NCBI GenBank assembly: GCA_013416795.1 | Contig: RQSC01000025.1 | Coordinates: forward strand, 346,858-410,857 | DNA length: 64,000 nucleotides | Source: Prasinococcaceae sp. CCMP 1430 | Taxonomy: Eukaryota; Plantae; Prasinodermophyta | Reading direction: 5' to 3' | Shown here: one piece after another, positions 4,517 through 37,191 of the stretch | Numbering within the stretch: position 1 is the first letter of the stretch | How the letters are laid out: every line of letters starts with the position of its first letter | Made by a program: the position numbers and the translations under genes | The notes under the pieces: model-generated | Seen by the model: the letters and a program-made list of their open reading frames with translations, nothing else | Databases searched by the model: none | Told to the model about the DNA's origin: nothing

Positions 4517-6136
4517 ATGCGCCACGTGGGAACGCAGGCGGTGCGGGCAATGAGTGCCACTTGCGTGCGCGCGACGGATGACGCGCGGGGATGGCAGGCA
4601 TGGATGGGGCGAAGTCAGGAGCGCGCGCGCGCGAAAGATGGCAGCGTCCCCGCGCCACACCTCGTCGCGTGGAAGCCGCAGGCGAAGATGCCGATGCCAT
4701 CCTCGGCAGCGCGCCCTTCAGGTGGCGCTGGCGCCCACACTGCACTCACCCTCACCTACTACCGTATGCACCCGCACGCCGCCGGTGGCTGCCGCAGCCG
4801 CAGCACCAGCGTGGAGCTCACGCCGCGCGCGTTTGAGCTCGTCGACATTGCGCTTGAGGCGTACGTGTCTTTGCGCGTTGATCATTTGATGCGGGCGACC
4901 GGTCACCATAATCAGCAGGAGGAGGCATGCGCAGTGGCGCATCCCGAAGGCGCTTCTACGGGCGGAGTGGCTGGATGCGCAATCGCCGAGGCTGAGGGTG
5001 ATTGTAGGCTCGCCGAACGTCTTGCAGAACGTGATTCGACGGGCAGCAGCGAAAGCAGTCGAGCACCAAGCATGTCTGCTCTCGCCGAGCGTGGCGTGAG
5101 CGTTGTGCACGCACAGCATCCTAATTCGACAGCGGCCGACGCTGCGGGCTCGAGCACGTGGCCGAGCTCCAGCGACGGCGCAGCCGTGGCGCCACCTGCG
5201 CTGCCAATGCGCCGCGAGCACAGCGCCGCCTCGTCGCTTGGCTCCTCAACCGGCTCCAACATCGTCGCCTCGTGCCCGCCACGTGATGTGAGGAGCTCGC
5301 GCGGCTGGCCACCGGCCGGTTGGCCTGCAGGAGAGCGAGATGTGCCCGTCGACGCCAGAATGGCGCCATCGCCATGCGAGGCGTCGTCTGAATCGTCGTG
5401 GGCGATAGTGGATGACGCAGCGGAGGCAGCAGGGCGTGCAAGCGACAACGATTTGAGGAGCGGGCGGGGCTTTGCCGTGGGCGCCTCCGATGCTGTACAA
5501 TTTTTTGAGTTGCCCGACGCCCGGCCACTCGACGCCGACTTCGAGGAGCTCCCTGAGGACTGCGCCAGCGTCCTGAGCACAGCGCTTGCGCGCCCCGCCG
5601 TTTTTAGCAGCATCCCGAGCTCCTCGAGCGAGAGCGCCGGAGCAAGCACGCGCGAGAGCACCAACTGCAGAGTGCATGCAGGCACGGCGAGATCAGACAC
5701 GAGCAGTGGAGCCGCCAGCAGTGATGGCGGGGCCGAGGAGCTCATGGAGGCAATCGAGGCTGCAATCATGACCGTACCGTCCTCGCAGCCGCAGAGCCGA
5801 GCGGCTCCAATAGGCACTCAGATGTCGACGGCGGCCGCCTCGTCCTCCGGAACGACGACGCCGATCGAACCGAACATGATTGACAACGCTCATAGCTTTC
5901 TTTCACACGTACTCGGTGCTATGTCGGGCGGCCTGCGTCGCGTGCGCGACAGCTGCCTCCGCAGGGTACTATTTCAAGAGGCTACCGATGGCTCGGTCCA
6001 CCTGCGCAACAGCGCCATGGCACTGATCATCGCGGTGGCCATAATCTCTTTCACGCGCAGCTCAAGCTCACCCGCAGGGCGCACTTTGCTGAAGGCGAGG
6101 GTCTTGCGGCGCGAACAGCGGCGCTCGCAAAACTAG
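4517..6136 (+). CDS. Hypothetical Ser/Ala-rich, largely disordered protein with a C-terminal hydrophobic segment; start codon uncertain
   Basis: 539-codon open frame that converges on VTA1. Hydrophobic stretch SAMALIIAVAIISFT (about 6011-6055) is followed by a basic tail. No recognised domain. Confidence 0.55.
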   Translation: MRHVGTQAVRAMSATCVRATDDARGWQAWMGRSQERARAKDGSVPAPHLVAWKPQAKMPMPSSAARPSGGAGAHTALTLTYYRMHPHAAGGCRSRSTSVELTPRAFELVDIALEAYVSLRVDHLMRATGHHNQQEEACAVAHPEGASTGGVAGCAIAEAEGDCRLAERLAERDSTGSSESSRAPSMSALAERGVSVVHAQHPNSTAADAAGSSTWPSSSDGAAVAPPALPMRREHSAASSLGSSTGSNIVASCPPRDVRSSRGWPPAGWPAGERDVPVDARMAPSPCEASSESSWAIVDDAAEAAGRASDNDLRSGRGFAVGASDAVQFFELPDARPLDADFEELPEDCASVLSTALARPAVFSSIPSSSSESAGASTRESTNCRVHAGTARSDTSSGAASSDGGAEELMEAIEAAIMTVPSSQPQSRAAPIGTQMSTAAASSSGTTTPIEPNMIDNAHSFLSHVLGAMSGGLRRVRDSCLRRVLFQEATDGSVHLRNSAMALIIAVAIISFTRSSSSPAGRTLLKARVLRREQRRSQN

Positions 6137-15823: not shown

Positions 15824-18337
15824 TCACTTGCGCTTGCGCGCGGACCGGCGCACGGGCGAGGCCGCCTCCTCGGGCTGTGCCGCCACCGGGATCACCGCTT
15901 CGTTGGGCTCATCGTTTTGGAGGCGCTTGAGTGCCAGGGGCACACTGGGGGAATCGACGCTGGGTGCTGCCCCGGCACTGCGCTTGCGTGAGCGCGTGCT
16001 GCGTGCCGAGGTGGGATCGCTCGGTAGCGCTTTGGTCGCCCCTGTCCGCGCCACAGCTGTCTTGGCAGTCGCGCGAGCAGTCGGCCGCCGCAACTTGCTC
16101 CCCCTCCCAGCGGTCTTTGCATCGATCGTTGCAGTAGAAGCAACAGGTTCCACGGGGGTGGCCTCCGGCGCCGGCGGGCCCTCGTCGCGAGCGGCAGTCT
16201 GGGCAGCCTCGCTCAGACGCCGCAGCAAGTCGGCCTTGCGGCCAGTCGTGGGAAGGCCGCGCGCCCCCAGCTCGCGCTCCAACTCGGCCACTTTCATTGC
16301 AGACATCTCCTCCTCGGAAGGGAAAGGAGTGCTTGTGGTCGCTGGCAGCGCAGGCGTCGCGGTTGTAGGCGCAGGGGTTGCCTCCGGCTCCGGCGCGCCC
16401 TCGTCGCGAGCGGCAGTCTGGGCAGCCTCGCTCAGACGCCGCAGCAAGTCGGCCTTGCGGCCAGTCGTGGGAAGGCCGCGCGCCCCCAGCTCGCGCTCCA
16501 ACTCGGCCACTTTCATTGCAGACATCTCCTCCTCGGAAGGGAAAGGAGTGCTTGTGGTCGCTGGCAGCGCAGGCGTCGTTGCAGTCTGGGCAGCAGCTAG
16601 CCCGGACACAGCTTCGGCTCCGCGCTGGCGACTCGAGCGCCGGCCGGCGCCAGAGGTGGGTGCGACCGAAGGTGCCGATGCCTGTACCGGCTCCGGCGAC
16701 TCAATCGCTGCCTCGCTCGGGGTTGGCACAGCACGGCTGGCACGCCGAGACCGCTTTGCTGGCGGGGCCGCGTCTTCCTGAGCCCCGAGGCCAATCTCGG
16801 CACCGCCTGCTGGCTCCGCCGCGTCGACACTGATGCGCTTCGAGGATCGGCGCCTCTGAGGAGACACAGCGTCACGCGAGGCGACCTTCTCTGCTACGCC
16901 GCGCTCCTTGTCCTTGCGCTTGCGTGAGCCTCGCGGAGACTTTCCTGCCGGAGACTTTCCTGCCGGGGACTTTCGCGCTTGTGCAGACGTGTGCTTGGCC
17001 TCCGCGTGTGACGCCTTCGCGTCCTGTAGGATCTTCTCCTTGTCCGCAATAGCTTTCTGACGTATCGCGTCCGCCTCAGCCTTCGCCGAAGCGAGCACGT
17101 CCTGCGCCTTCAGTTTTGCAGCAGCCAGCGCCTCTGTTGCGTCCCTATGCGCTGCTTCAGCCTCCTCGCGCCTGCGCGCAGCATCAGCTCGAGCCGATTC
17201 AGCCGCGGCAAGTTTTTCGGAAAGCTGCACCTCCTTCTCAGAAACGGCCGCTTCATGCGCCTTGAGGGCGCCCGCACGGCTTTCAAGCTGCGCACTCTGG
17301 ACTCGCAGCTGTTCCATCCGATCCTCGTATTCCTGCCGCTCCTGCTCGGCGAGCGCGCGTGCCTCCTGGTGTGCCGTTTCTGCGAGCGCGGCGGCCTCCA
17401 TTCGCTCTGTGGCCTTCGCCATTTCGCGGCGTGCGGCGGCTTTCGCAGCTTCTTGGTCGGCTGCTGCCGCCGCGACGCGAGCTCCTGCGTCTCGTGTTGC
17501 CGTGTCCGCTGCGGCTGTTGCCACCTCAGCCTTGGCCTGAGCCGCCTTCATCGCCGCCTCCATCTTGCCGCTCTGGGCCTCGGCGGCGAGGGCCCTTTCC
17601 TCCGCGCTCCTCCTCGCCTCGACGAGCTTTGCAGCCTGCGCTTCGTGGGTCTTAAGCGACGCCGCCTCATCCGCTGCAATCTTCCTCGCAGCCTCTTCGG
17701 CGGCTTCGATCTTCTGCTCGGCCTCCAGCGCGCGCTTGCGCCACTCCTCGACCTGCGACGACGCCATGCTCATCTGGAGCTCGGCCTCATTGCTTCTCTG
17801 GGCGGCTTCGGCCATGGCCTTCCTTGAGTTGGCATCGACCTCGTCGATACCCGCGTGCGCAATCTCCAGCCGCTCCAAAAGGTCGTTGCGCTCGACGGTG
17901 TACTCCAGCCGCTCCGTCTCGAGCGCAGCAATGCGCCGTTCCATCTCCTGAGCGCGCGCGCGACTCACTGTATCACCTGAAGTCCCGCCACACGCGCCAA
18001 GGGCGCCGCGATCGCGGAATGTGTCCCACACCGAGCGAACGGGAGGCACCGCGGCCGAGGCGGGACGCGGCTGCGGCCTTTCGGTGAATTCTTCGCCTGC
18101 CTCATCCAGCGACGAGAAAAGCGGCATGCGCATGCCGAGCGAAGCGTACGCCCTCTTGGCGCGCGCGCTTGAGAATGCGCCCCCGGACGCTGGAGGCTCG
18201 CGTGGCTGTGGCGTGGCCGCCGCGGCGGTGGCAGCCGCAGATACCAAGAGCGCGCCCGCGCCTTCCAGACCCTCGCCACCTGCGCCGGGCGATGCAGCGA
18301 AAAGCGGGTTCGTAGCGCCGAGCTCGGCCATCACCAT
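15824..18337 (-). CDS. Nuclear coiled-coil protein with two tandem SAP domains, 837 aa
   Basis: ATG at 18337 (MVMAELGATNP). Long E/A/K/R heptad region, basic NLS-like motifs (GSRKRKDKE, RRSARKRK), and two copies of MSAMKVAELERELGARGLPTTGRKADLLRRL (SAP consensus). Confidence 0.85.
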   Translation of the reverse strand: MVMAELGATNPLFAASPGAGGEGLEGAGALLVSAAATAAAATPQPREPPASGGAFSSARAKRAYASLGMRMPLFSSLDEAGEEFTERPQPRPASAAVPPVRSVWDTFRDRGALGACGGTSGDTVSRARAQEMERRIAALETERLEYTVERNDLLERLEIAHAGIDEVDANSRKAMAEAAQRSNEAELQMSMASSQVEEWRKRALEAEQKIEAAEEAARKIAADEAASLKTHEAQAAKLVEARRSAEERALAAEAQSGKMEAAMKAAQAKAEVATAAADTATRDAGARVAAAAADQEAAKAAARREMAKATERMEAAALAETAHQEARALAEQERQEYEDRMEQLRVQSAQLESRAGALKAHEAAVSEKEVQLSEKLAAAESARADAARRREEAEAAHRDATEALAAAKLKAQDVLASAKAEADAIRQKAIADKEKILQDAKASHAEAKHTSAQARKSPAGKSPAGKSPRGSRKRKDKERGVAEKVASRDAVSPQRRRSSKRISVDAAEPAGGAEIGLGAQEDAAPPAKRSRRASRAVPTPSEAAIESPEPVQASAPSVAPTSGAGRRSSRQRGAEAVSGLAAAQTATTPALPATTSTPFPSEEEMSAMKVAELERELGARGLPTTGRKADLLRRLSEAAQTAARDEGAPEPEATPAPTTATPALPATTSTPFPSEEEMSAMKVAELERELGARGLPTTGRKADLLRRLSEAAQTAARDEGPPAPEATPVEPVASTATIDAKTAGRGSKLRRPTARATAKTAVARTGATKALPSDPTSARSTRSRKRSAGAAPSVDSPSVPLALKRLQNDEPNEAVIPVAAQPEEAASPVRRSARKRK
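16178..16578. repeat. Identical 182-bp internal direct repeat (16178-16359 and 16397-16578, period 219 bp = 73 codons) encoding the SAP domain
   Basis: Base-by-base comparison of the two copies showed no mismatch. Confidence 0.95.
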
Positions 18338-19315
18338 CGTCGTAGCCGCGTGGCACGGCGCTCGGCGGCGGCGGGGGCTGCGCCGGCGGCTGCAGCGCGC
18401 TCCAGGCTGGGCGCGCGCCGCTGTGCACGGAGTGGCGCCGCCCGCGCGTCCCCGCCACATAGGGCACGGCCGGAGGCGCCGCGCGCCGAGTCGCCGCGAA
18501 AACGCGCGCGCGCCCTTTTTTTCCCCCTCCCCCCGGGGGAAATAAACAAAATAAAAAGCGCCAAAAAATGGGCGCGGAAAAAACTCGGCGCGGCGCGCGG
18601 CGCGCGCGAGCGCGGCTGGAGGGTGACACGTCGGGTGCCACGCTGCAGACTCCCCCGGTGTCAGCCAGGCCAGCCAATAGTAGCTATTGGAGTGACTTGG
18701 GACTAGTCCATGTCAGCGCGGCATGTGATCATTCCGAATTGATGCCGGGGATGGCGGCCGGACCGGTCCCGGGCAGATTCGGTCTGCGCAATCGGGATCC
18801 TCGAATCCTATCTGGCGCGCGCGGGCGAGCGAGGACCGCAGCAGGCCCCCGAAAAGCGCGCCGCGCAATCGCGCCGGCGATGATAATTACAGGCGCTGGC
18901 TGGAGGGCGCACGCAATCGCGCGCGCGCGCGGCGGCCAGCCGCCCTTATCCTCTGCGCCGCGCGCGCAGAGGCGGCGCGCGCGCGGGGCGCAAACGCAAG
19001 GCCCAGCGCGCGCTGCTGCGGCGGCCGCTTCTGCCGCGCCACACGCGCACGCGCCCTCGCGCACGTTCGCAGGCTTGCGCGCGCGAGCGCACATACGCTT
19101 CCCCGGCTTGCCCCCGCTCCAGGTTCCCTCCCCCGCTCGCGCCTAACCAGCACACCCACACATCAACCAGCCCCACACCCCTTCCGCTCAGTCCTTCGCA
19201 CCCATCCGCGCACGCAACTTGCCTCTTCCTGGCGCGCTGCTGACGCTCCGTCGGCGAGGATCGAGAGCCACGCACGCGCACAAGGACGCGCACACGACAC
19301 GTGACCATCGTGCCG

Positions 19316-27566: not shown

Positions 27567-28210
27567 GCGCGTCGGCGGTGATGAGCGCGCGCACCGTCCA
27601 AGTCGCGGCCCCAGCCGCGCACCCGCGCGGCCGGACGGCCGGCCGCGGCGCGCGCGCCGACCGAGCCGCGAGACGGAACCCAGCCAGACCAGCCAGGCCC
27701 CCGGGCCAGCTGACTCCAGCCACCCCCAGGCAGCCTCCAGCCAGCCAGCCAGCTGGTCTGCTGACTGAGAGAGGCCGCGCCCGGCCGGCAGCCAGCCGGC
27801 CTCTGCGAGCGCCTCGGCTGAAGACGCGCACAGCCTGAAAGAGTCGCGACGAGTCAACTAGTACCATCAGATCGTACTACTACAGCATAGCTCTGCCTGT
27901 TGTTGTTGTTTGTGGCGGGTGTCGTGCACCTCGCGGTCGGATGTAGAATGGGATGAAAAAGCATGAGGAGTGGAGAGCGCAGCAAGCGTCCAGTCCGCGC
28001 ACACCTACTACAGTAGGTAGCTACTGTGGATGAGGAATTGGAATTCGAGTGAGATGTGTGCACGTACGTGCGGCTGGGGAGGCAGCCGGCGCGTCCGTGG
28101 CCGGCTCGGACGCGTGCGTGCGCGGGTGGGCCGCCGGGCGTCGACGCGGGGGGGTGCGCANTGCTGCTGCCTGGGTGAGAGCGGACCGGGGGGGGAGGCT
28201 GACTGACCAG

Positions 28211-29383
28211 GGTCTGCACGCGCGCGGCGGCGGCGAGTACGTGCGGCGCCAGTGGCAGCGCGCGCGCGGCAGGGCTGGTGGGGTGGGGGGCACGCCTTCG
28301 CGCGCAGCGCGCGGCGCGGATGGCGGTCTCCATGGGGCATCGAAATCGGCGAGGCCCAGGGGGGGGGTATCCCAGGCGGCAGGCGGGAGCGCAGCTGGCG
28401 CGGGTGGCCCGGCACCACAGGCACTCCGCGGAGGCACTGAGGCCCAGTGGGCGCTCGCGGACAAGCTCGCCGCGCCGGTCGGCTTCGCGGCGGGCGTGTT
28501 TGGCAGCGTGGTGGGCGTCGGGGGTGGTACAATCATCGTGCCTGCGCTCACATCTTGCGCGGGCGTGGCACAGAAGGTAATCAGCGGCACGAGCCTGGTG
28601 GCCGTGCTCGCGACGAGCGCTGCGAGCAGCGCCGCGTATGCCACGAACGGGCTCATCGACACCAAGGTGCGTTGCGCTCCACGCGGGCGTGCAGGGCGTG
28701 GCACCATCTCCGCGCTTGTGCTTCGGACCGCAAAGATTGCTTTCGTGGGCTTTGCTCACGGCTGCACGGAGCTGACCCGGCGCGCGCCGCGTGCCTTGCC
28801 TGCGGGCGCGCCTCCTCCTGCTCCTCAACAGGCCGCTGCCATCGTGGCAGCAACGGCGCTACTCAGCGCGAGCTTCGGCGCGCGCGCAACAGCCACGCTC
28901 TCCACACAGCAGCTCAAGCGTTTCCTTGGCTTCTTCCTGGTGAGCGTCGCCCCGCTGATTCCCCTAAAGAAAGCCATCTACCAAGGTCGAAAAGACGAGG
29001 CGGTCGTTACGGGTGAGCTCGATGCGGCACGGGCATGCGTGCTCGCTGCGACGGGCGCCGTGGCGGGCTTCGCGAGCGGCCTACTGGGCATCGGCGGCGG
29101 CACAATCGTCACCCCATTGCTCGCGTTGACGACCGACCTGCCACAGGCTGGCGCCGTCGCGACCTCACTCGCAGCGATGTTCCTGCCGAGCTGCGTGGCC
29201 CTTGCGACACACGCTTCCTTGGGCAACGTGCGCTGGCGCATGGGCGCTTTCCTGGCGATGGGCACAGCGCTCGGCGCGGGGGTCGGCAGCCGGGCAGCAT
29301 TGAGCGCCCCGGACGGGGCGCTCGAGGGTGTGTTCGCCCTGGGCATGGCCTTTCTAGGCGCGCGCACGCTCAAGTGGGTGTGA
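28211..29383 (+). CDS. TauE/SafE (TSUP, sulfite exporter) family membrane transporter; intron 28667-28831; 5' end unresolved
   Basis: Two repeats of the family motif (AGVFGSVVGVGGGTIIVP...SGTSL and AGFASGLLGIGGGTIVTP...AVATSL) and a hydrophobic profile. The true start is unclear near the N at 28161. Confidence 0.85.
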   Translation, partial: GLHARGGGEYVRRQWQRARGRAGGVGGTPSRAARGADGGLHGASKSARPRGGVSQAAGGSAAGAGGPAPQALRGGTEAQWALADKLAAPVGFAAGVFGSVVGVGGGTIIVPALTSCAGVAQKVISGTSLVAVLATSAASSAAYATNGLIDTKVRCAPRGRAGRGTISALVLRTAKIAFVGFAHGCTELTRRAPRALPAGAPPPAPQQAAAIVAATALLSASFGARATATLSTQQLKRFLGFFLVSVAPLIPLKKAIYQGRKDEAVVTGELDAARACVLAATGAVAGFASGLLGIGGGTIVTPLLALTTDLPQAGAVATSLAAMFLPSCVALATHASLGNVRWRMGAFLAMGTALGAGVGSRAALSAPDGALEGVFALGMAFLGARTLKWV

Positions 29384-30560
29384 GGGGGCGCGCCCCCGTC
29401 ACCGCGCGGCCGCCGATCACTTGTGCTGATGGTATGCCTCACTCAAACACATGGACGGCCGGCCCCCATAATTATTCGGCCTTGTCGTCGATTTTCCTGC
29501 CAGAGCCGAACCCGCCGCCGCACCGCGCCTGCGACTGCACCCCCCCCACATACAGACCCCCCCCCCCAAAAATTGGTATCGTGGTTTTCCTACTCAAGTT
29601 CGTACTGTACAGTGTACTGTTCGACGCAGCTTGATTGATGGGCATGTTCCTCGTCGTGCGGGCCATGTGGTCAGCATTGCGCGCCCGCGCCCTCCGCCGC
29701 TGCCCCTCTCCCCCCCCCCCCCTCTCCTCTGCCCTCCCGCCTGGCTGGCGGTGCCCCCCCGGCGCGCCGTTGGTCAGCCCGCGTCGATTCCTGGCCCACC
29801 GCGGGCGAAGCGCCTTTTCCCGCCGCGGACCCCGCACGATCGTCGGCCGGCCGGCCGGCGATTTCCCCCTTGGCTGGCTTGGGTCCTGTCCGCCCCTGGA
29901 CTGATTGGATTTCCGTTTCCATTCGTCTGCTCGTGCGTCTGTCGGTCGGTCTCGGTCTCGGTTTCGTTCTGGATCTCGATCTCGATCTGTGGCTGTGTGT
30001 GTGTCTGTGGCTGCGACGCGGCGCGCGGCGCGCGCTCGGCCGGAGCGAGCGGCTGCCGCGGCGGCGATCGGTCGGTNCGCGAGGATGGCGATGTAGTCGA
30101 ATGAGCGCGCGCGCACAGGCACGCGCGCAGGCGCGCTCGTCGCACAGGCACACGCACGCACGCTTGCACGCATGGTCGCACACACACCTCCCTCACCCCC
30201 CAGTCGAGCACGAATGCGACGGCGCCCGAGAACTCAGCGCGAGAGAGCTGCCGCCGCGCAGGGGTGCCGGGCGCGCCGCTTGCGCTTGCGGGGAGGCCAA
30301 GGCGGCGGGTCCACGCAAGTGGCGTTGCGCGGCGGTGCGTGCCCGTGCGCCCGCGCCGCCCTGCGAACCGCGCTGCGCACCGTCGCTCTGAGAAACCCTA
30401 GCGGGCGTACTGAATTCGCGCCGGGGAGGTTGCGAGGCGTGCGCAACCGTCGCGGGTGCAGCCGGCGGTGGTGCGCCAGCCGCGGAAGAGGCCTATCATC
30501 TTGACGAGGATCCGACTGACCCTAGCCCCTACGCGCAGGTCTCACGCGGCGCGTGCAGTC

Positions 30561-33500
30561 ATGAGCACGCTCAGTGCCTCGGGCGCCAAGGTCGTCGCAC
30601 AGCTGATGCGCCTTGCGAAGGCGAACCCGGCACTCGCTGTTGGGTCACTCGCGCTGCTGTGGCCTGCGCTCAGTGTCGCGAGCGTGAGCTTCGTGCTCCT
30701 CCTGCCGCTGCTCATCCCGGCATCCGTCATCGCTCTTGCCGGCATCGTATTCTACAAGTACGTGGGCGCAGGCAATGCACACACTGCAACGCCGGCGCCA
30801 GAGGCGAAGGAGCAGGCACCTGCCGCAACCGCCGCGGCGAGCAGCGATGACCTGCCGCCAGCGCCGAAGGAGCAAGCACCTGCCGCACCCACTGCGGCAA
30901 GCAGCGAAGACCTCCCGCCGGTGCCCGTGTACAAGCAGTGGGTCGACCCCATCCCCGAGAACGAGACGTTCGACCAGCTCCGCAAGATCATGGACGAGCG
31001 CATCATCGTGATTGACGGCGCGATGGGCACGTCTGTGCAGAAGTACAAACTGGAGGAGGAGGACTACTGCGGCACGCTGTATCCCGACCACTCGGTGGAC
31101 CTGAAAGGAAACAACGACCTGCTGGTGCTCACCCGCCCGGACGTCATCGAGGAGATCCACAACAACTTTCTCGAGGCGGGTGCGGACATCATTGAGACAA
31201 ACACCTTCAACGGCACGTTCATCTCGCAGGGCGACTACAACATGGACACGTACGACGAGGTGTTCGCGATCAACAAGGGCGCGGCCGAGCTGGCGAAGAA
31301 GTGCACGACTGCGTGGACCCAGAAGGACCCGTCGAGGCCGCGCTTCACCGCCGGTGCCATCGGGCCCACCAACAAGACTCTGTCGGTGTCGCCGTCGGTG
31401 GAGAACCCGGCGTTCCGCGGCTGCACGTGGGACGAGGTGGTGAAGGCGTACTACGAGCAGTGCGAGGGCCTCATGGCCGGCGGCGTTGACCTGTTCTTGG
31501 TGGAGACCATCTTCGACACGCTGAACGCCAAGGCCGCGCTGTTCGCCATCGACAAGTTCTTCGCTGACAAGAAGTGCAGGATTCCCGTGTTCGTGTCAGG
31601 CACCATCGTGGACAACTCGGGGCGCACGCTCTCCGGCCAGACCAACGAGGCGTTCTGGAACTCGCTGGCGCACAGCAAGCCGCTGGCGATCGGCCTGAAC
31701 TGCGCGCTCGGCGCAGACGACATGAAGCCGTACGTCGAGAACCTGAGCAGCTGCGCGGACTGCTACGTCTTCTGCTACCCCAACGCGGGCCTGCCCAACG
31801 CGATGGGTGGTTATGACCAGAAAGGTGACGAGTTCGCCGAGGAGATCCGCCCCTTCATGGAGGCCGGCATCCTCAACGGCATCGGCGGCTGCTGCGGCAC
31901 CTCTTTCGAGCACATCAAGGCCGTCGCGGACATGGCCAAGGAGTATCAGCCGCGCGCGTGCCACGCCGTCAAGTCGCTCATGCGCCTGTCCGGCCTCGAG
32001 CCGCTGAACTACGAGCCGTGCCTGAGCAACATGCGCTCCACTTTCCTGAACGTGGGCGAGCGTTGCAACGTGGCGGGCTCGAGCATCTTCAAGAAGGCCA
32101 TCGTGGACGGCAACTGGGACAAGGCACTGTCCATCGCCGTGAAGCAGGTCGACGCGGGTGCGGACGTTGTCGACATCAACGTCGACGACGGGCTGATCGA
32201 GCCCATCGGCGCGATGACCAAGTTCGTCAACCTGCTGGTGTCGGATCCCGAGGCCTCCAAGATGCCCTTCATGATCGATTCGTCCAAGTTCCACGTGGTT
32301 GAGTGCGGCGTCAAGTGCTGCCAGGGCAAGTCCATCGTCAACTCGATCTCGCTCAAGGAGGGCGAGGAGGCGTTCATCAAGAACGCCAGGATGGTGAAAG
32401 CGTTTGGCTCGGCGGTGGTAGTGATGGCGTTCGACGAGAACGGTCAGGCCGCGACCTGCAAGGAGAAGGTGTCGATGTGCCAGCGCGCGTACAAGATCCT
32501 CGTGGAGGAGGTCGGCTTCAACGCGCAGGACATCGTGTTCGACCCGAACATCCTGACGATTGGCACGGGCATGGCGGAGCACAACGACTACGCGGTGGAC
32601 TTCATCAACGCCACGCGCGAGATCAAGCGCACCTGCCCGGGCTGCAAGATCTCTGGCGGCGTGTCCAACCTGGCTTTCAGCTTCCGTGGCAACGAGCCGG
32701 TGCGCCGCGCGTGCCACAGCGTGTTCCTGCACTACGCCTGTGCCGCGGGCATGGACATGGGCATCGTCAACGCCGCCCACTGCATCGAGGACAAGTACGA
32801 GAACATCGACAAGGAGCTGCTCGGCTACGTGGAGGACCTCGTGCTCAATCGCTGCGACAACGCGACCGAGCGCATGCTCGAGTACGCCGCCACGCTCGAC
32901 CCCAAGTCCAAGCCGTGCGCTCTGCGCAAGAAGGATGAGCACAAGGCCTTCGTCGCTGCTCCCAAGATCAACGAGCACGGCGTCGACCGTATCGCCGAGC
33001 CCGATGCGAGCACGCTCGTCCCGGTGCCCGTGTACAAGCAGTGGGTCGACCCCATCCCCGAGAACGAGACGTTCGACCAGCTCCGCAAGATCATGGACGA
33101 GCGCATCATCGTGATTGACGGCGCGATGGGCACGTCTGTGCAGAAGTACAAACTGGAGGAGGAGGACTACTGCGGCACGCTGTATCCCGACCACTCGGTG
33201 GACCTGAAAGGAAACAACGACCTGCTGGTGCTCACCCGCCCGGACGTCATCGAGGAGATCCACAACAACTTTCTCGAGGCGGGTGCGGACATCATTGAGA
33301 CAAACACCTTCAACGGCACGTTCATCTCGCAGGGCGACTACAACATGGACACGTACGACGAGGTGTTCGCGATCAACAAGGGCGCGGCCGAGCTGGCGAA
33401 GAAGTGCACGACTGCGTGGACCCAGAAGGACCCGTCGAGGCCGCGCTTCACCGCCGGTGCCATCGGGCCCACCAACAAGACTCTGTCGGTGTCGCCGTCG

Positions 33501-36500
33501 GTGGAGAACCCGGCGTTCCGCGGCTGCACGTGGGACGAGGTGGTGAAGGCGTACTACGAGCAGTGCGAGGGCCTCATGGCCGGCGGCGTTGACCTGTTCT
33601 TGGTGGAGACCATCTTCGACACGCTGAACGCCAAGGCCGCGCTGTTCGCCATCGACAAGTTCTTCGCTGACAAGAAGTGCAGGATTCCCGTGTTCGTGTC
33701 AGGCACCATCGTGGACAACTCGGGGCGCACGCTCTCCGGCCAGACCAACGAGGCGTTCTGGAACTCGCTGGCGCACAGCAAGCCGCTGGCGATCGGCCTG
33801 AACTGCGCGCTCGGCGCAGACGACATGAAGCCGTACGTCGAGAACCTGAGCAGCTGCGCGGACTGCTACGTCTTCTGCTACCCCAACGCGGGCCTGCCCA
33901 ACGCGATGGGTGGTTATGACCAGAAAGGTGACGAGTTCGCCGAGGAGATCCGCCCCTTCATGGAGGCCGGCATCCTCAACGGCATCGGCGGCTGCTGCGG
34001 CACCTCTTTCGAGCACATCAAGGCCGTCGCGGACATGGCCAAGGAGTATCAGCCGCGCGCGTGCCACGCCGTCAAGTCGCTCATGCGCCTGTCCGGCCTC
34101 GAGCCGCTGAACTACGAGCCGTGCCTGAGCAACATGCGCTCCACTTTCCTGAACGTGGGCGAGCGTTGCAACGTGGCGGGCTCGAGCATCTTCAAGAAGG
34201 CCATCGTGGACGGCAACTGGGACAAGGCACTGTCCATCGCCGTGAAGCAGGTCGACGCGGGTGCGGACGTTGTCGACATCAACGTCGACGACGGGCTGAT
34301 CGAGCCCATCGGCGCGATGACCAAGTTCGTCAACCTGCTGGTGTCGGATCCCGAGGCCTCCAAGATGCCCTTCATGATCGATTCGTCCAAGTTCCACGTG
34401 GTTGAGTGCGGCGTCAAGTGCTGCCAGGGCAAGTCCATCGTCAACTCGATCTCGCTCAAGGAGGGCGAGGAGGCGTTCATCAAGAACGCCAGGATGGTGA
34501 AAGCGTTTGGCTCGGCGGTGGTAGTGATGGCGTTCGACGAGAACGGTCAGGCCGCGACCTGCAAGGAGAAGGTGTCGATGTGCCAGCGCGCGTACAAGAT
34601 CCTCGTGGAGGAGGTCGGCTTCAACGCGCAGGACATCGTGTTCGACCCGAACATCCTGACGATTGGCACGGGCATGGCGGAGCACAACGACTACGCGGTG
34701 GACTTCATCAACGCCACGCGCGAGATCAAGCGCACCTGCCCGGGCTGCAAGATCTCTGGCGGCGTGTCCAACCTGGCTTTCAGCTTCCGTGGCAACGAGC
34801 CGGTGCGCCGCGCGTGCCACAGCGTGTTCCTGCACTACGCCTGTGCCGCGGGCATGGACATGGGCATCGTCAACGCCGCCCACTGCATCGAGGACAAGTA
34901 CGAGAACATCGACAAGGAGCTGCTCGGCTACGTGGAGGACCTCGTGCTCAATCGCTGCGACAACGCGACCGAGCGCATGCTCGAGTACGCCGCCACGCTC
35001 GACCCCAAGTCCAAGCCGTGCGCTCTGCGCAAGAAGGGTGACGTAGTGGAGAAGGTCGTGGAGAAGGGCTCGTCATGGCGTGACAAGTCCGTGCAGGACC
35101 GCCTGAGCCACTCCCTTGTGAAGGGCATCGACGAGTTTGTCGTGCGCGACACCGAGGAGGCGCGCACGTGCGGCCTTTACCCGCGCCCGCTGCACGTCAT
35201 CGAGGGCCCGCTCATGGACGGCATGAGCACCGTCGGCGACCTCTTCGGCGCGGGCAAGATGTTCCTGCCGCAGGTGATCAAGTCGGCGCGCGTGATGAAG
35301 AAGGCCGTGGCGCACTTGATCCCCTTCATGGAGGAGGAGAAGCGGTTGATGGCCGAGCAGGAGGGCATTGACGCCGACGCCGACAACTCTGTGGGCACCT
35401 TTGTGATTGCCACCGTCAAGGGTGACGTGCACGACATCGGCAAGAACATCGTGGCGGTGGTGCTGGGCTGCAACAACTGGAAAGTGATCGACCTCGGCGT
35501 GATGTGCTCGTGCCAGTCCATCCTCGACGCGTGCAAGGAGCACAACGCGGACATTCTGGGCCTCAGCGGCCTTATCACTCCTTCGCTGGACGAGATGGTC
35601 ACCGTTGCCAAGGAGATGGAGAAGGCGGGCTTCAAGATCCCGCTTCTCGTGGGCGGCGCAACCACCAGCCGCATGCATACGGCGGTCAAGCTGACCCCCC
35701 AGTACAGCGGACCGACCGTGCACGTGCTCGACGCCTCGCGTGCGGTGCCGGTGTGCTCGTCACTCATTGACGAGAAGCAGTACGCCGAATTTGTCGAGGA
35801 CACGCGCGAGACGTACAAGGAGATGCGCGAGGAGTTCTACGCCGGCCTCGAGGACCGCAAGTACGTTTCGCTCGAGCAGGCGCGCGCCAAGGCGCTCACG
35901 GTTGACTTTACCACGCCCGAGAACACGCCGGTGACGCCCAAGCAGCTGGGCGTCCACGTCCTGCGCGACTTTCCCATCGAGGAGGTGGTCGATTACATCG
36001 ACTGGAACCCCTTCTTCCAGGTGTGGCAGCTGCGCGGCCGCTATCCGAACCGTGGCTATCCCAAGATCTTCAACGACGAGACTGTCGGTGCCGAGGCGAA
36101 GAAGCTCTTCGACGACGCACAGACCATGCTCAAAGACATCATCGCGCACAAGAAGCTTTCGCTGCGCGGCGTGCTCGGCCTCTTCCCGGCCAACTCCGTC
36201 GGTGACGACATCGAGGTGTACGCCGAAGACGGCGAGCGCGGTGCGCCCCGGGCGAGCTTCTACACCCTGCGCGAACAGGCCGAGAAGGAGAACACCAGCG
36301 AGCCCTACCTTGCGCTGGCGGACTTTGTGGCTCCGAAGGAGAGCGGCGTGAAAGATTACGTGGGCGCGTTCGTCACATCGGCCGGCTTCGGCCTCGAGGA
36401 GATGACCAAGGCGTTTAAGGCGGACAACGATGACTACAGCTACATCCTCGCTGAAGCGCTCGCGGACCGTCTGGCGGAGGCCTTCGCCGAGGTGGTGCAC

Positions 36501-36869
36501 ATCAAGATTCGCAAGGAGTACTGGGGATATGCGCCCGATGAGGACCTGTCGCCCGACGACCTTCTCAAGGTTAAGTACGACGGCATCCGCCCGGCGCCGG
36601 GCTATCCGTCGCAGCCCGACCACACGGAGAAGAACACCATGTGGGAGCTCATGAAGGTCGCCGAGGAGACCGACGTGACGCTCACCGAGTCGCTCGCCAT
36701 GCTGCCGGCCGCCTCGGTGTCTGCGCTCGTGTTCGGCGGCAAGTGCTCGAAGTACTTCGCCGTTGGCAAGATCACCGACGAACAGGTGCAGGACTACGCC
36801 GCGCGCAAGAAGATGGACGTCAAAGAGGTCGAGCGGTGGCTCGCGACGAGCCTCAACTATGAGCCTTGA
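30561..36869 (+). CDS. METH: Cobalamin-dependent methionine synthase, 2102 aa, intronless, with N-terminal hydrophobic extension and duplicated Hcy- and folate-binding modules
   Basis: Hcy domain ([28 protein letters not shown]) x2; pterin domain ([31 protein letters not shown]) x2; cap ([23 protein letters not shown]); B12 motif [10 protein letters not shown]; activation domain ([21 protein letters not shown]). Confidence 0.98.
30918..35037. repeat. 2017-bp direct repeat inside METH (30918-32934 and 33021-35037, offset 2103 bp = 701 codons), with a unique 86-bp spacer at 32935-33020
   Basis: The translations of both copies are identical and every nucleotide stretch I compared was identical. 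Boundaries were read directly (CCGGTGCCCGTG at the start, AAGAAGG at the end). Confidence 0.95.
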
Positions 36870-37191
36870 GATGGTGGTAGTTGTCCCTGTCTTTCAGCGA
36901 GGTGGAGATGTGCGTCGTCCGCCGGGTGTCTTCTGTCGTGGTCGGGTTCCGCGCGAAGCTTATTCTTTGGTGGCTTGTGTAAGATTTGTTACAGTCTGTT
37001 CTACGAATCTGTGTCGTGCTCGTGTTCGTGTGGGCGGGCGGGCGGGCACTTTGTTTACACACATAGCTAAGATGCCAGCGATTCTCTCCCTAGTAGTCAC
37101 CTGGCGAAGGGCGCGTCGGTCACGAGAGAACGCGCCCTGTGCGCACTGTCCGCGGGGGCAAGCAACGCCACGCACGTGAAAGACTTGGCAG

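Follow-up and report, generated by a model that had tools for sequence, protein, structure and literature searches.

The question raised by one locus of the alga Prasinococcaceae sp. CCMP 1430 is how a single methionine synthase gene came to carry the same catalytic module twice without one nucleotide difference, and whether the extra module is of use to the enzyme. The locus lies in 64,000 nt of contig RQSC01000025.1 (assembly GCA_013416795.1, positions 346,858–410,857 of the forward strand), here termed the window; coordinates below are window positions. A preliminary description, made from the DNA letters, recognized a doubled homocysteine (Hcy) plus folate (Fol) module with intact zinc ligands in both copies, followed by one cobalamin (B12) and AdoMet tail. 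Its coordinates, linker peptide and domain order all prove correct on self-comparison, translation, Pfam searches and motif checks. The gene, METH, can with good confidence be regarded as a genuine, transcribed two-unit methionine synthase gene with a conserved linker, a hydrophobic anchor, an ancient origin and a history of concerted evolution.

A methionine synthase with two Hcy-Fol units

The METH coding sequence (30561–36869, plus strand) is intronless and specifies 2102 amino acids (aa) from ATG to stop; Tara Oceans gene calls have the same start and length. It is part of one open reading frame (ORF; 30456–36869, plus strand) that covers both copies of the module and the tail. Self-comparison of the window at an offset of 2103 nt reveals a direct repeat of 2017 nt with 0 mismatches, copy 1 being at 30918–32934 and copy 2 at 33021–35037 (both plus strand). 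The repeat period of 2103 nt equals 701 codons, and copy 2 is therefore in frame with copy 1. Between the copies is a spacer of 86 nt (32935–33020, plus strand), which occurs once and encodes the inter-unit linker of 29 residues (DEHK...STLV). Copy 1 comprises an Hcy barrel (approximately 31005–31934) and a pterin/folate barrel (approximately 32055–32771). Copy 2, an identical Hcy and pterin unit, adjoins the B12 half of the protein. The single tail (35038–36866, plus strand), as delimited by Pfam, translation and PDB matches, begins with the Fol-to-cap linker and contains the B12 cap (approximately 35094–35318), the B12-binding domain (approximately 35397–35672) and the AdoMet activation domain (approximately 35976–36812), all on the plus strand.

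Pfam assigns Hcy S-methyltransferase (PF02574) and pterin-binding (PF00809) domains twice each, and in the tail B12-binding_2 (PF02607), B12-binding (PF02310) and Met_synt_B12 (PF02965, 391 bits) once each. The zinc motifs GLNC and GGCCG are at unit positions 259 and 323 of both copies, the pterin/folate barrel has the SNxxFSFRG motif, and the DxHxxG motif of the B12-binding domain is present as DVHDIG. PDB entries matched are 1bmt and 3bul for the B12 part and 2o2k and 1msk for the AdoMet domain, and the tail also matches 1k7y. By its sequence, the protein is a member of the cobalamin-dependent methionine synthase (MetH/METH/MTR) family with a variant architecture: the canonical enzyme has one copy per module (Hcy-Fol-Cap-Cob-Act), and here two Hcy-Fol units precede a single Cap-Cob-Act, in the order Hcy-Fol-linker-Hcy-Fol-cap-B12-AdoMet. 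Taken together, copy 2 and the tail (1282 aa) can be aligned from end to end with the solved full-length methionine synthase 9ssp of 1265 aa (1549 bits), and therefore unit 1 and the linker are additional to a complete canonical enzyme.

That the doubled architecture is real is virtually certain. Nine contigs of Tara Oceans each code for a protein of 2102 aa, with leader and linker as in the window (the linker with 0–2 substitutions), two units and one tail. One of them, L001, has 34 differences from the window in 6309 nt, and the contigs are, as their sequences indicate, distinct natural alleles and not copies of the window assembly. A JGI transcript scaffold that ends in poly(A), L002, is 100% identical to window positions 30918–37004 (6087 nt). 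The match takes in both copies, the linker, the tail and a 3′ untranslated region of 135 nt (36870–37004, plus strand), after which L002 continues as a run of A. The Prasinoderma coloniale gene model PRCOL_00000848-RA (EukProt; here P0121) also covers both units and falls in the 90%-identity cluster of METH, which assigns the window to P. coloniale or to a very close relative. The published P. coloniale genome is a PacBio assembly of 22 chromosomes polished with Illumina reads (PMC7455551). The window, which has Ns, belongs to a different and more fragmented assembly.

The opposite view is that the whole doubling is an assembly artefact, by a tandem mis-join or a duplicated contig, and that the real gene has one unit. 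Perfect repeats are a classic signature of such errors, and several observations weigh in the same direction. The copies of the Prasinoderma gene that can be read as DNA are all from apparently short-read assemblies, and these can pass one collapsed repeat node twice. The transcript scaffold consists of window positions 30533–30950, a gap of 100 N, and then 30918–37004, with the gap exactly at the repeat start. In addition, single-unit contigs (1401 aa) of the same Prasinoderma genotype are found in Tara assemblies. This genotype appears as a one-unit form of 1401 aa (L003–L005) and as a two-unit form of 2102 aa (P0127) in different Tara assemblies, which can signify either a skipped assembly loop or a real copy-number polymorphism. 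However, the junctions and linker recur in nine independent Tara contigs with distinct alleles, in the transcript and in the annotation of the PacBio-based P. coloniale assembly; the linker is homologous to those of dozens of other algae; and the doubled form is the majority state of the METH family. An artefact on this scale is hardly credible. The argument in the preliminary description that the linker speaks against a tandem mis-join also holds, as alignment and motif identify this linker as the conserved inter-unit linker of green-algal METH. A chance repeat was rejected as an explanation, as were a gene-model fusion of two tandem genes, since the ORF is single and intronless and the B12/AdoMet half is present only once, and bacterial contamination, since the neighbouring genes (eIF3c, ankyrin-HDAC) are eukaryotic.

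A separate question is whether the two copies are as identical in the living strain as they are in the window. For the identity, the preliminary description offered a very recent duplication, ongoing gene conversion, or consensus homogenization during assembly. According to the last of these, the architecture is real, the copies differ by about 1% in the strain, and one consensus was used for both. The P. coloniale protein P0121 gives this view substance: it equals the window protein in copy 2 and tail and has nine residue differences, all in copy 1 (G37D, VEN161-163RDD, V174M, V195L, C646R, N648D and D661N). Of these variants, RDD, M, L and 661N are also present in an MMETSP transcript whose tail is identical. 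Exact identity of the copies may thus not hold in the living strain. The Ns and fragmentation of the window assembly relative to the 22-chromosome one, the gap of L002 at the repeat boundary, and the assembly of one genotype with one or two units are on the same side. In the Tara contigs the copies differ from each other only at ≤81 nt from the 3′ junction, and interior variants are present in both copies, a pattern that conversion would produce, but that would follow equally if an assembler passed twice through one repeat node of a de Bruijn graph.

Against an identity made by assembly, no site differs between the window and L002 along the 6087 nt that they share. At 36 nt from the junction with the linker each shows the copy-2 state, for which reads must have been present unless k was very small, and a random choice of bubbles should yield mosaics, whereas the two assemblies have one and the same pure type. 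Large contigs of other species also have near-perfect pairs (2 mismatches in 2069 nt in locus L008, described below), the Tara alleles P0127 and P0130 are likewise without difference between copies, and strains may simply differ. Identity produced by the assembler is quite possible, if not quite probable. The zero-difference state would be the extreme of a real continuum, possibly sharpened by assembly. Consensus homogenization may account for the last ~1% of identity, in view of the nine differences in P0121.

Distribution, concerted evolution and age of the units

Relatives were sought by searching a collection of 5.8 billion proteins with unit 1 at lengths of 1175–3740 aa; the 120 best were taken and their units delimited with phmmer. 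Bit scores of the unit-1 matches step near 1100, 2250, 3350 and 4250. About 90 of the 120 best relatives have two, three or four Hcy-Fol units with a single B12/AdoMet tail, and none has more than one tail. A multi-unit METH is accordingly the usual state in green algae and no peculiarity of Prasinoderma. Four units are found in Haematococcus and Bryopsis. About a dozen proteins have three, among them those of Chlorella sorokiniana, Botryococcus, Myrmecia, Trebouxia, Chlamydomonas incerta, Chlamydomonas eustigma, Volvox carteri, Volvox africanus and Dunaliella; the Chlamydomonas reinhardtii protein (CHLRE_06g250902v5) has three, one of them partial. Some sixty have two units; among these are many marine metagenome proteins and those of the streptophyte algae Mesostigma and Chlorokybus, of a pedinophyte, and of Chlorella vulgaris, Parachlorella, Micractinium and Nannochloris. 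One unit is found in some species and assemblies. The number of units varies between close relatives (two in Chlorella vulgaris vs three in C. sorokiniana), which is a prediction of unequal exchange.

Annotated unit counts are lower bounds. In Pedinophyceae sp. YPF-701 (L008:2766–11270) the DNA has four units with a period of about 2.2 kb and 98.5–99.9% identity, whereas the protein model has two, and the ORFs are split at 4812/4865 and 7012/7065.

Green multi-unit METH entries (C. reinhardtii, C. sorokiniana, Volvox carteri, Dunaliella salina, Haematococcus and Bryopsis) are like the window protein in unit boundaries, kind of linker, single tail and near-identity of units. They have two to four units and usually introns, whereas window METH has two intronless units with 0 nt differences. 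Pelagophyte-type METH (Chrysophaeum taylorii, Aureococcus and metagenome proteins) also has two to three Hcy-Fol units, which are 94–100% identical within a protein, and its full-length proteins have the B12/AdoMet tail. However, the pelagophyte repeat unit includes a leader of about 100 aa without evident similarity to the green linker, and these units form a separate long branch. The multi-unit design of pelagophytes probably arose independently.

Two other arrangements were observed. The Mesostigma viride protein P0073 has a glycogen-binding-type carbohydrate-binding module (PF16561) at the N-terminus and again between its two Hcy-Fol units. In three distant proteins of about 2000 aa with 33–38% identity (P0150, P0197 and P0230), an N-terminal region of about 450 aa is followed by two Hcy plus pterin units and, at the C-terminus, by a ketoreductase (KR) domain. 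Neither a B12 nor an AdoMet domain was detected in them, and their architecture differs from that of METH.

No description of multi-unit METH or of repeated Hcy-folate units was found in the open full-text literature, subscription-only papers being outside the scope of the search. There is no mention of it in the P. coloniale genome paper (PMC7455551), in a survey of B12 enzymes of the plant lineage that scored METH Pfam domains, in a dinoflagellate metH/metE study, or in the literature citing the Chlamydomonas METH gene. The sequences themselves are in public databases, some of them under the name methionine synthase; as far as seen, the multi-unit feature itself is apparently undescribed. 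The preliminary description considered that the architecture might be already widespread and described. It is indeed widespread, given the roughly 90 relatives above, but no paper describing it was found.

The units within a protein resemble one another far more than they resemble those of other species: identity within one protein is 90–100%, typically 97–99%, and between species 65–74%. In a maximum-likelihood tree of 101 units, grouping is by species almost everywhere, the outcome that the preliminary description had put forward as a sign of concerted evolution. The similarity extends to the nucleotide level. In four loci on large contigs the identity of units is approximately 98.5–99.9%, introns included. 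Units 2 and 3 of Chlorella sorokiniana (L007) are 99.25% identical over 3850 nt, introns included. A Mamiellales-like gene (L006) on a pilon-polished contig of 1.7 Mb has units 98.45% identical over 2001 nt, and two pedinophyte units (L008) differ at 2 of 2069 nt. In C. incerta (L009), units 2 and 3 are 98.95% identical over 2763 nt; the unit proteins are 100% identical, and the 26 nt differences are therefore in introns, synonymous sites or the linker. The likeness of units is, on these alignments, kept at the DNA level and not at the protein level alone. Ongoing gene conversion or unequal exchange is the best-fitting explanation of unit identity, and of the three sources proposed at the outset, conversion best suits the within-species identity, the tree and the intron-spanning matches.

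As to the age of the duplication, the linker can be aligned between Prasinoderma, core chlorophytes, Chlorokybus and prasinophyte-like metagenome proteins, and green-algal METH proteins have their unit boundaries and a linker length of 26–36 aa in common. In 69 of 86 linkers the motif P[KR]x[NC]...[DNE]x[LIV][ASG]xP is present, most of the others being one-residue variants; it is seen in none of 39 true N-terminal leaders and in 3 of the 81 Fol-to-cap linkers. Independent duplications of an ancestral gene with one unit would thus not be expected to recreate the motif. The window linker matches it (PKINE...VDRIAEP). Where a protein has three or four units, its successive linkers are alike, and the true repeat is therefore unit plus linker; the window linker looks unique because a two-unit protein has only one.

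The tree adds a further indication of age. First units group across species in two instances, C. reinhardtii with C. incerta, and C. eustigma with P0015. This implies that in these lineages the duplication is older than speciation and that homogenization has been incomplete.

These data bear on the possibility that the window repeat is a very recent, Prasinoderma-specific tandem duplication that left filler DNA at its junction and has no earlier history. The lack of any difference over 2017 nt would be in keeping with it, and so would the clustering of units by species, as recurrent duplication would give the same. But the linker motif is common to chlorophytes and streptophyte algae and is absent from or rare in the other segments compared, unit boundaries and linker length are conserved, the divergent Tara alleles are all two-unit with the same linker, and the Chlamydomonadales have cross-species first-unit clades. 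A recent duplication, as offered in the preliminary description, does not fit a linker motif and unit boundaries common to green-algal phyla, and is highly improbable. One reservation is that linker similarity could partly reflect shared constraint and not common descent. An ancient origin, with concerted evolution since, is very probable from the alignments and tree. The phylum of P. coloniale is reported to branch before the chlorophyte–streptophyte split (PMC7455551); if so, the origin would be at or near the base of green plants.

Upstream units, the N-terminal hairpin and a possible mechanism

Where copies are identical, homogenization alone would keep upstream units intact without selection. 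More can be learned from first units that escaped homogenization. These are 5–22% diverged from the last unit of the same protein, yet only 0.4–2.1% of 243 columns that are invariant among last units are changed in them; they keep GLNC and GGCCG, and 98–99% of invariant residues. In the P0015 first unit, 3 of the 243 columns are changed, compared with about 55 expected under random spread. The pattern of substitutions signifies that purifying selection acts on the upstream unit itself, maintaining the fold and active-site residues. This evidence does not extend to use of the upstream units by the single B12 domain.

The extra unit might be an inert passenger, with only the B12-adjacent unit at work and conversion repairing those upstream. 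The canonical enzyme needs one unit only, copy 2 and the tail make a complete canonical METH, conversion can preserve sequence without selection, and some species and assemblies have one unit. On the other hand, first units that are 8–22% diverged almost wholly spare the invariant columns (as in P0015) and keep the zinc motifs, and C. incerta units 2 and 3 are identical as proteins despite 26 nt differences over 2763 nt. The design has also been retained in deep green-algal lineages and probably arose again in pelagophytes. The passenger explanation is improbable, and the upstream units are rather likely to be functional, judging from residue conservation.

A second property of the protein is at its N-terminus. 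The leader (30561–30917) contains a hydrophobic hairpin at about aa 21–65 (30621–30755, plus strand; Kyte-Doolittle maximum 2.63). A comparable hydrophobic segment is found in 51 of the 68 related METH proteins whose leaders are at least 60 aa long. The hairpin, with internal prolines, is conserved in Chlamydomonas, Volvox, Mamiellales-like metagenome-assembled genomes and Chlorokybus, and several of these share a preceding AKANP motif. From its leader, green METH looks to be anchored to a membrane or lipid droplet. The hairpin probably holds the protein at a membrane, where molecules would be crowded. Directly before unit 1, the leader also has a short imperfect tandem of about 20 residues (30861–30917), present twice and ending in [DE]DLPP; Tara alleles vary in this region (T90P, E116D).

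In canonical MetH, the folate and Hcy barrels are visited in turn by the B12 domain, which from time to time also docks on the AdoMet domain. Structural modelling with AlphaFold2 (AF2) predicts the linker as coil, with a block-mean predicted local distance difference test score (pLDDT) of 72–82. For a construct of Fol of unit 1, linker and Hcy of unit 2, the pLDDT is 87 and the predicted template modelling score (pTM) 0.88. The packing in this model was set aside as evidence of mechanism, as it may only mirror the normal Hcy:Fol interface in a construct where each domain is without its own partner.

A mechanism can be proposed in outline. The Pro-rich linker of about 29 residues, a coil in the model, would tether a second rigid Hcy-Fol pair, and every unit would be catalytically competent. 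The single B12 domain, or the B12 domains of neighbouring anchored molecules, could then be methylated and demethylated at any unit. Each cobalamin would in this way be served by a larger number of substrate-loaded stations, in cis or in trans. Multi-unit METH, with two to four units, would most likely have arisen once, early in green-plant evolution, and gene conversion and unequal exchange would then have kept units near-identical in each species and also altered their number. P. coloniale is reported to be a B12 auxotroph without the B12-independent isoform (PMC7455551).

The idea, put forward in the preliminary description, that two stations give more turnover per B12 is plausible, and what speaks for it is the purifying selection on upstream units at catalytic and invariant positions. 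Alternatives are that the extra units act in substrate capture only, that they serve neighbouring molecules only, or that the array is nearly neutral; the last is disfavoured because diverged first units spare invariant residues. A multi-station, B12-sparing mechanism is a tentative proposal, possible but short of likely. Somewhat more doubtful is the scenario in its entirety, i.e. an anchored multi-station METH with cobalamin cycling among two to four active units, an origin in the green-plant ancestor, concerted evolution, and reinvention in pelagophytes.

With regard to its surroundings, METH is flanked by eukaryotic genes, which include, in addition to eIF3c and ankyrin-HDAC, those for an ATG17-like protein and NAD kinase. 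The GC content of the window is 63–75%. An ORF of the TauE/SafE sulfite-exporter family (28049–29383, plus strand) is approximately 1.2 kb upstream of METH; the adjacency of two sulfur-metabolism genes may be coincidence. The only other repeat of at least 100 nt in the 64-kb window is an unrelated 219-nt tandem (16155–16592), whose two copies are 95% identical and lie in an 878-aa ORF of the minus strand (15824–18460) with two SAP-domain matches.

Comparison with known systems and significance

Canonical MetH, as represented by E. coli MetH and human MTR (9ssp, 8ssc and 8g3h), has its domains, zinc motifs, DxHxxG motif and activation domain in common with window METH. It has one Hcy-Fol unit per B12 domain, whereas window METH adds a complete unit, a linker of 29 residues and an N-terminal hairpin.

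The cobalamin-independent synthase, MetE, has a duplicated barrel (Pejchal and Ludwig 2005, as cited in PMC11197592). MetE is, like window METH, a methionine synthase shaped by internal duplication of the catalytic barrel. In MetE the copies have long since diverged, with loss of catalysis in the N-terminal barrel, whereas those of window METH stay near-identical with all catalytic motifs kept.

With respect to mode of evolution, polyubiquitin genes offer a parallel, as they are tandem coding repeats under concerted evolution. Long-lasting gene conversion of duplicated mtrA is a second example (PMC4632066). In these systems, as in METH, head-to-tail or paralogous coding units are homogenized at the DNA level and copy number is variable. 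The METH repeat, unlike theirs, encodes two enzyme domains, about 700 residues in all, which have to cooperate with a single downstream cofactor domain. METH is an unusually clean case of concerted evolution of a ~2-kb, two-domain module inside one gene.

There are practical implications as well. Collapsed or skipped units are frequent in short-read assemblies and gene models, as with the 1401- and 2102-aa forms and the two vs four units of the pedinophyte, and METH lengths and copy counts in algal surveys are consequently unreliable. To our knowledge, all mechanistic work on MetH assumes one Hcy unit, one folate unit and one swinging B12 domain. A natural enzyme with two to four intact units per cobalamin, found even in Chlamydomonas, allows a direct test of the reach of the B12 domain, and could show whether conformational sampling or product release limits turnover.

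It is through METH that about half of all algae depend on vitamin B12 from bacteria, and the properties of this enzyme bear on marine productivity and on alga–bacterium partnerships. If the proposal is true, a multi-station METH would raise methionine output per molecule of scarce B12.

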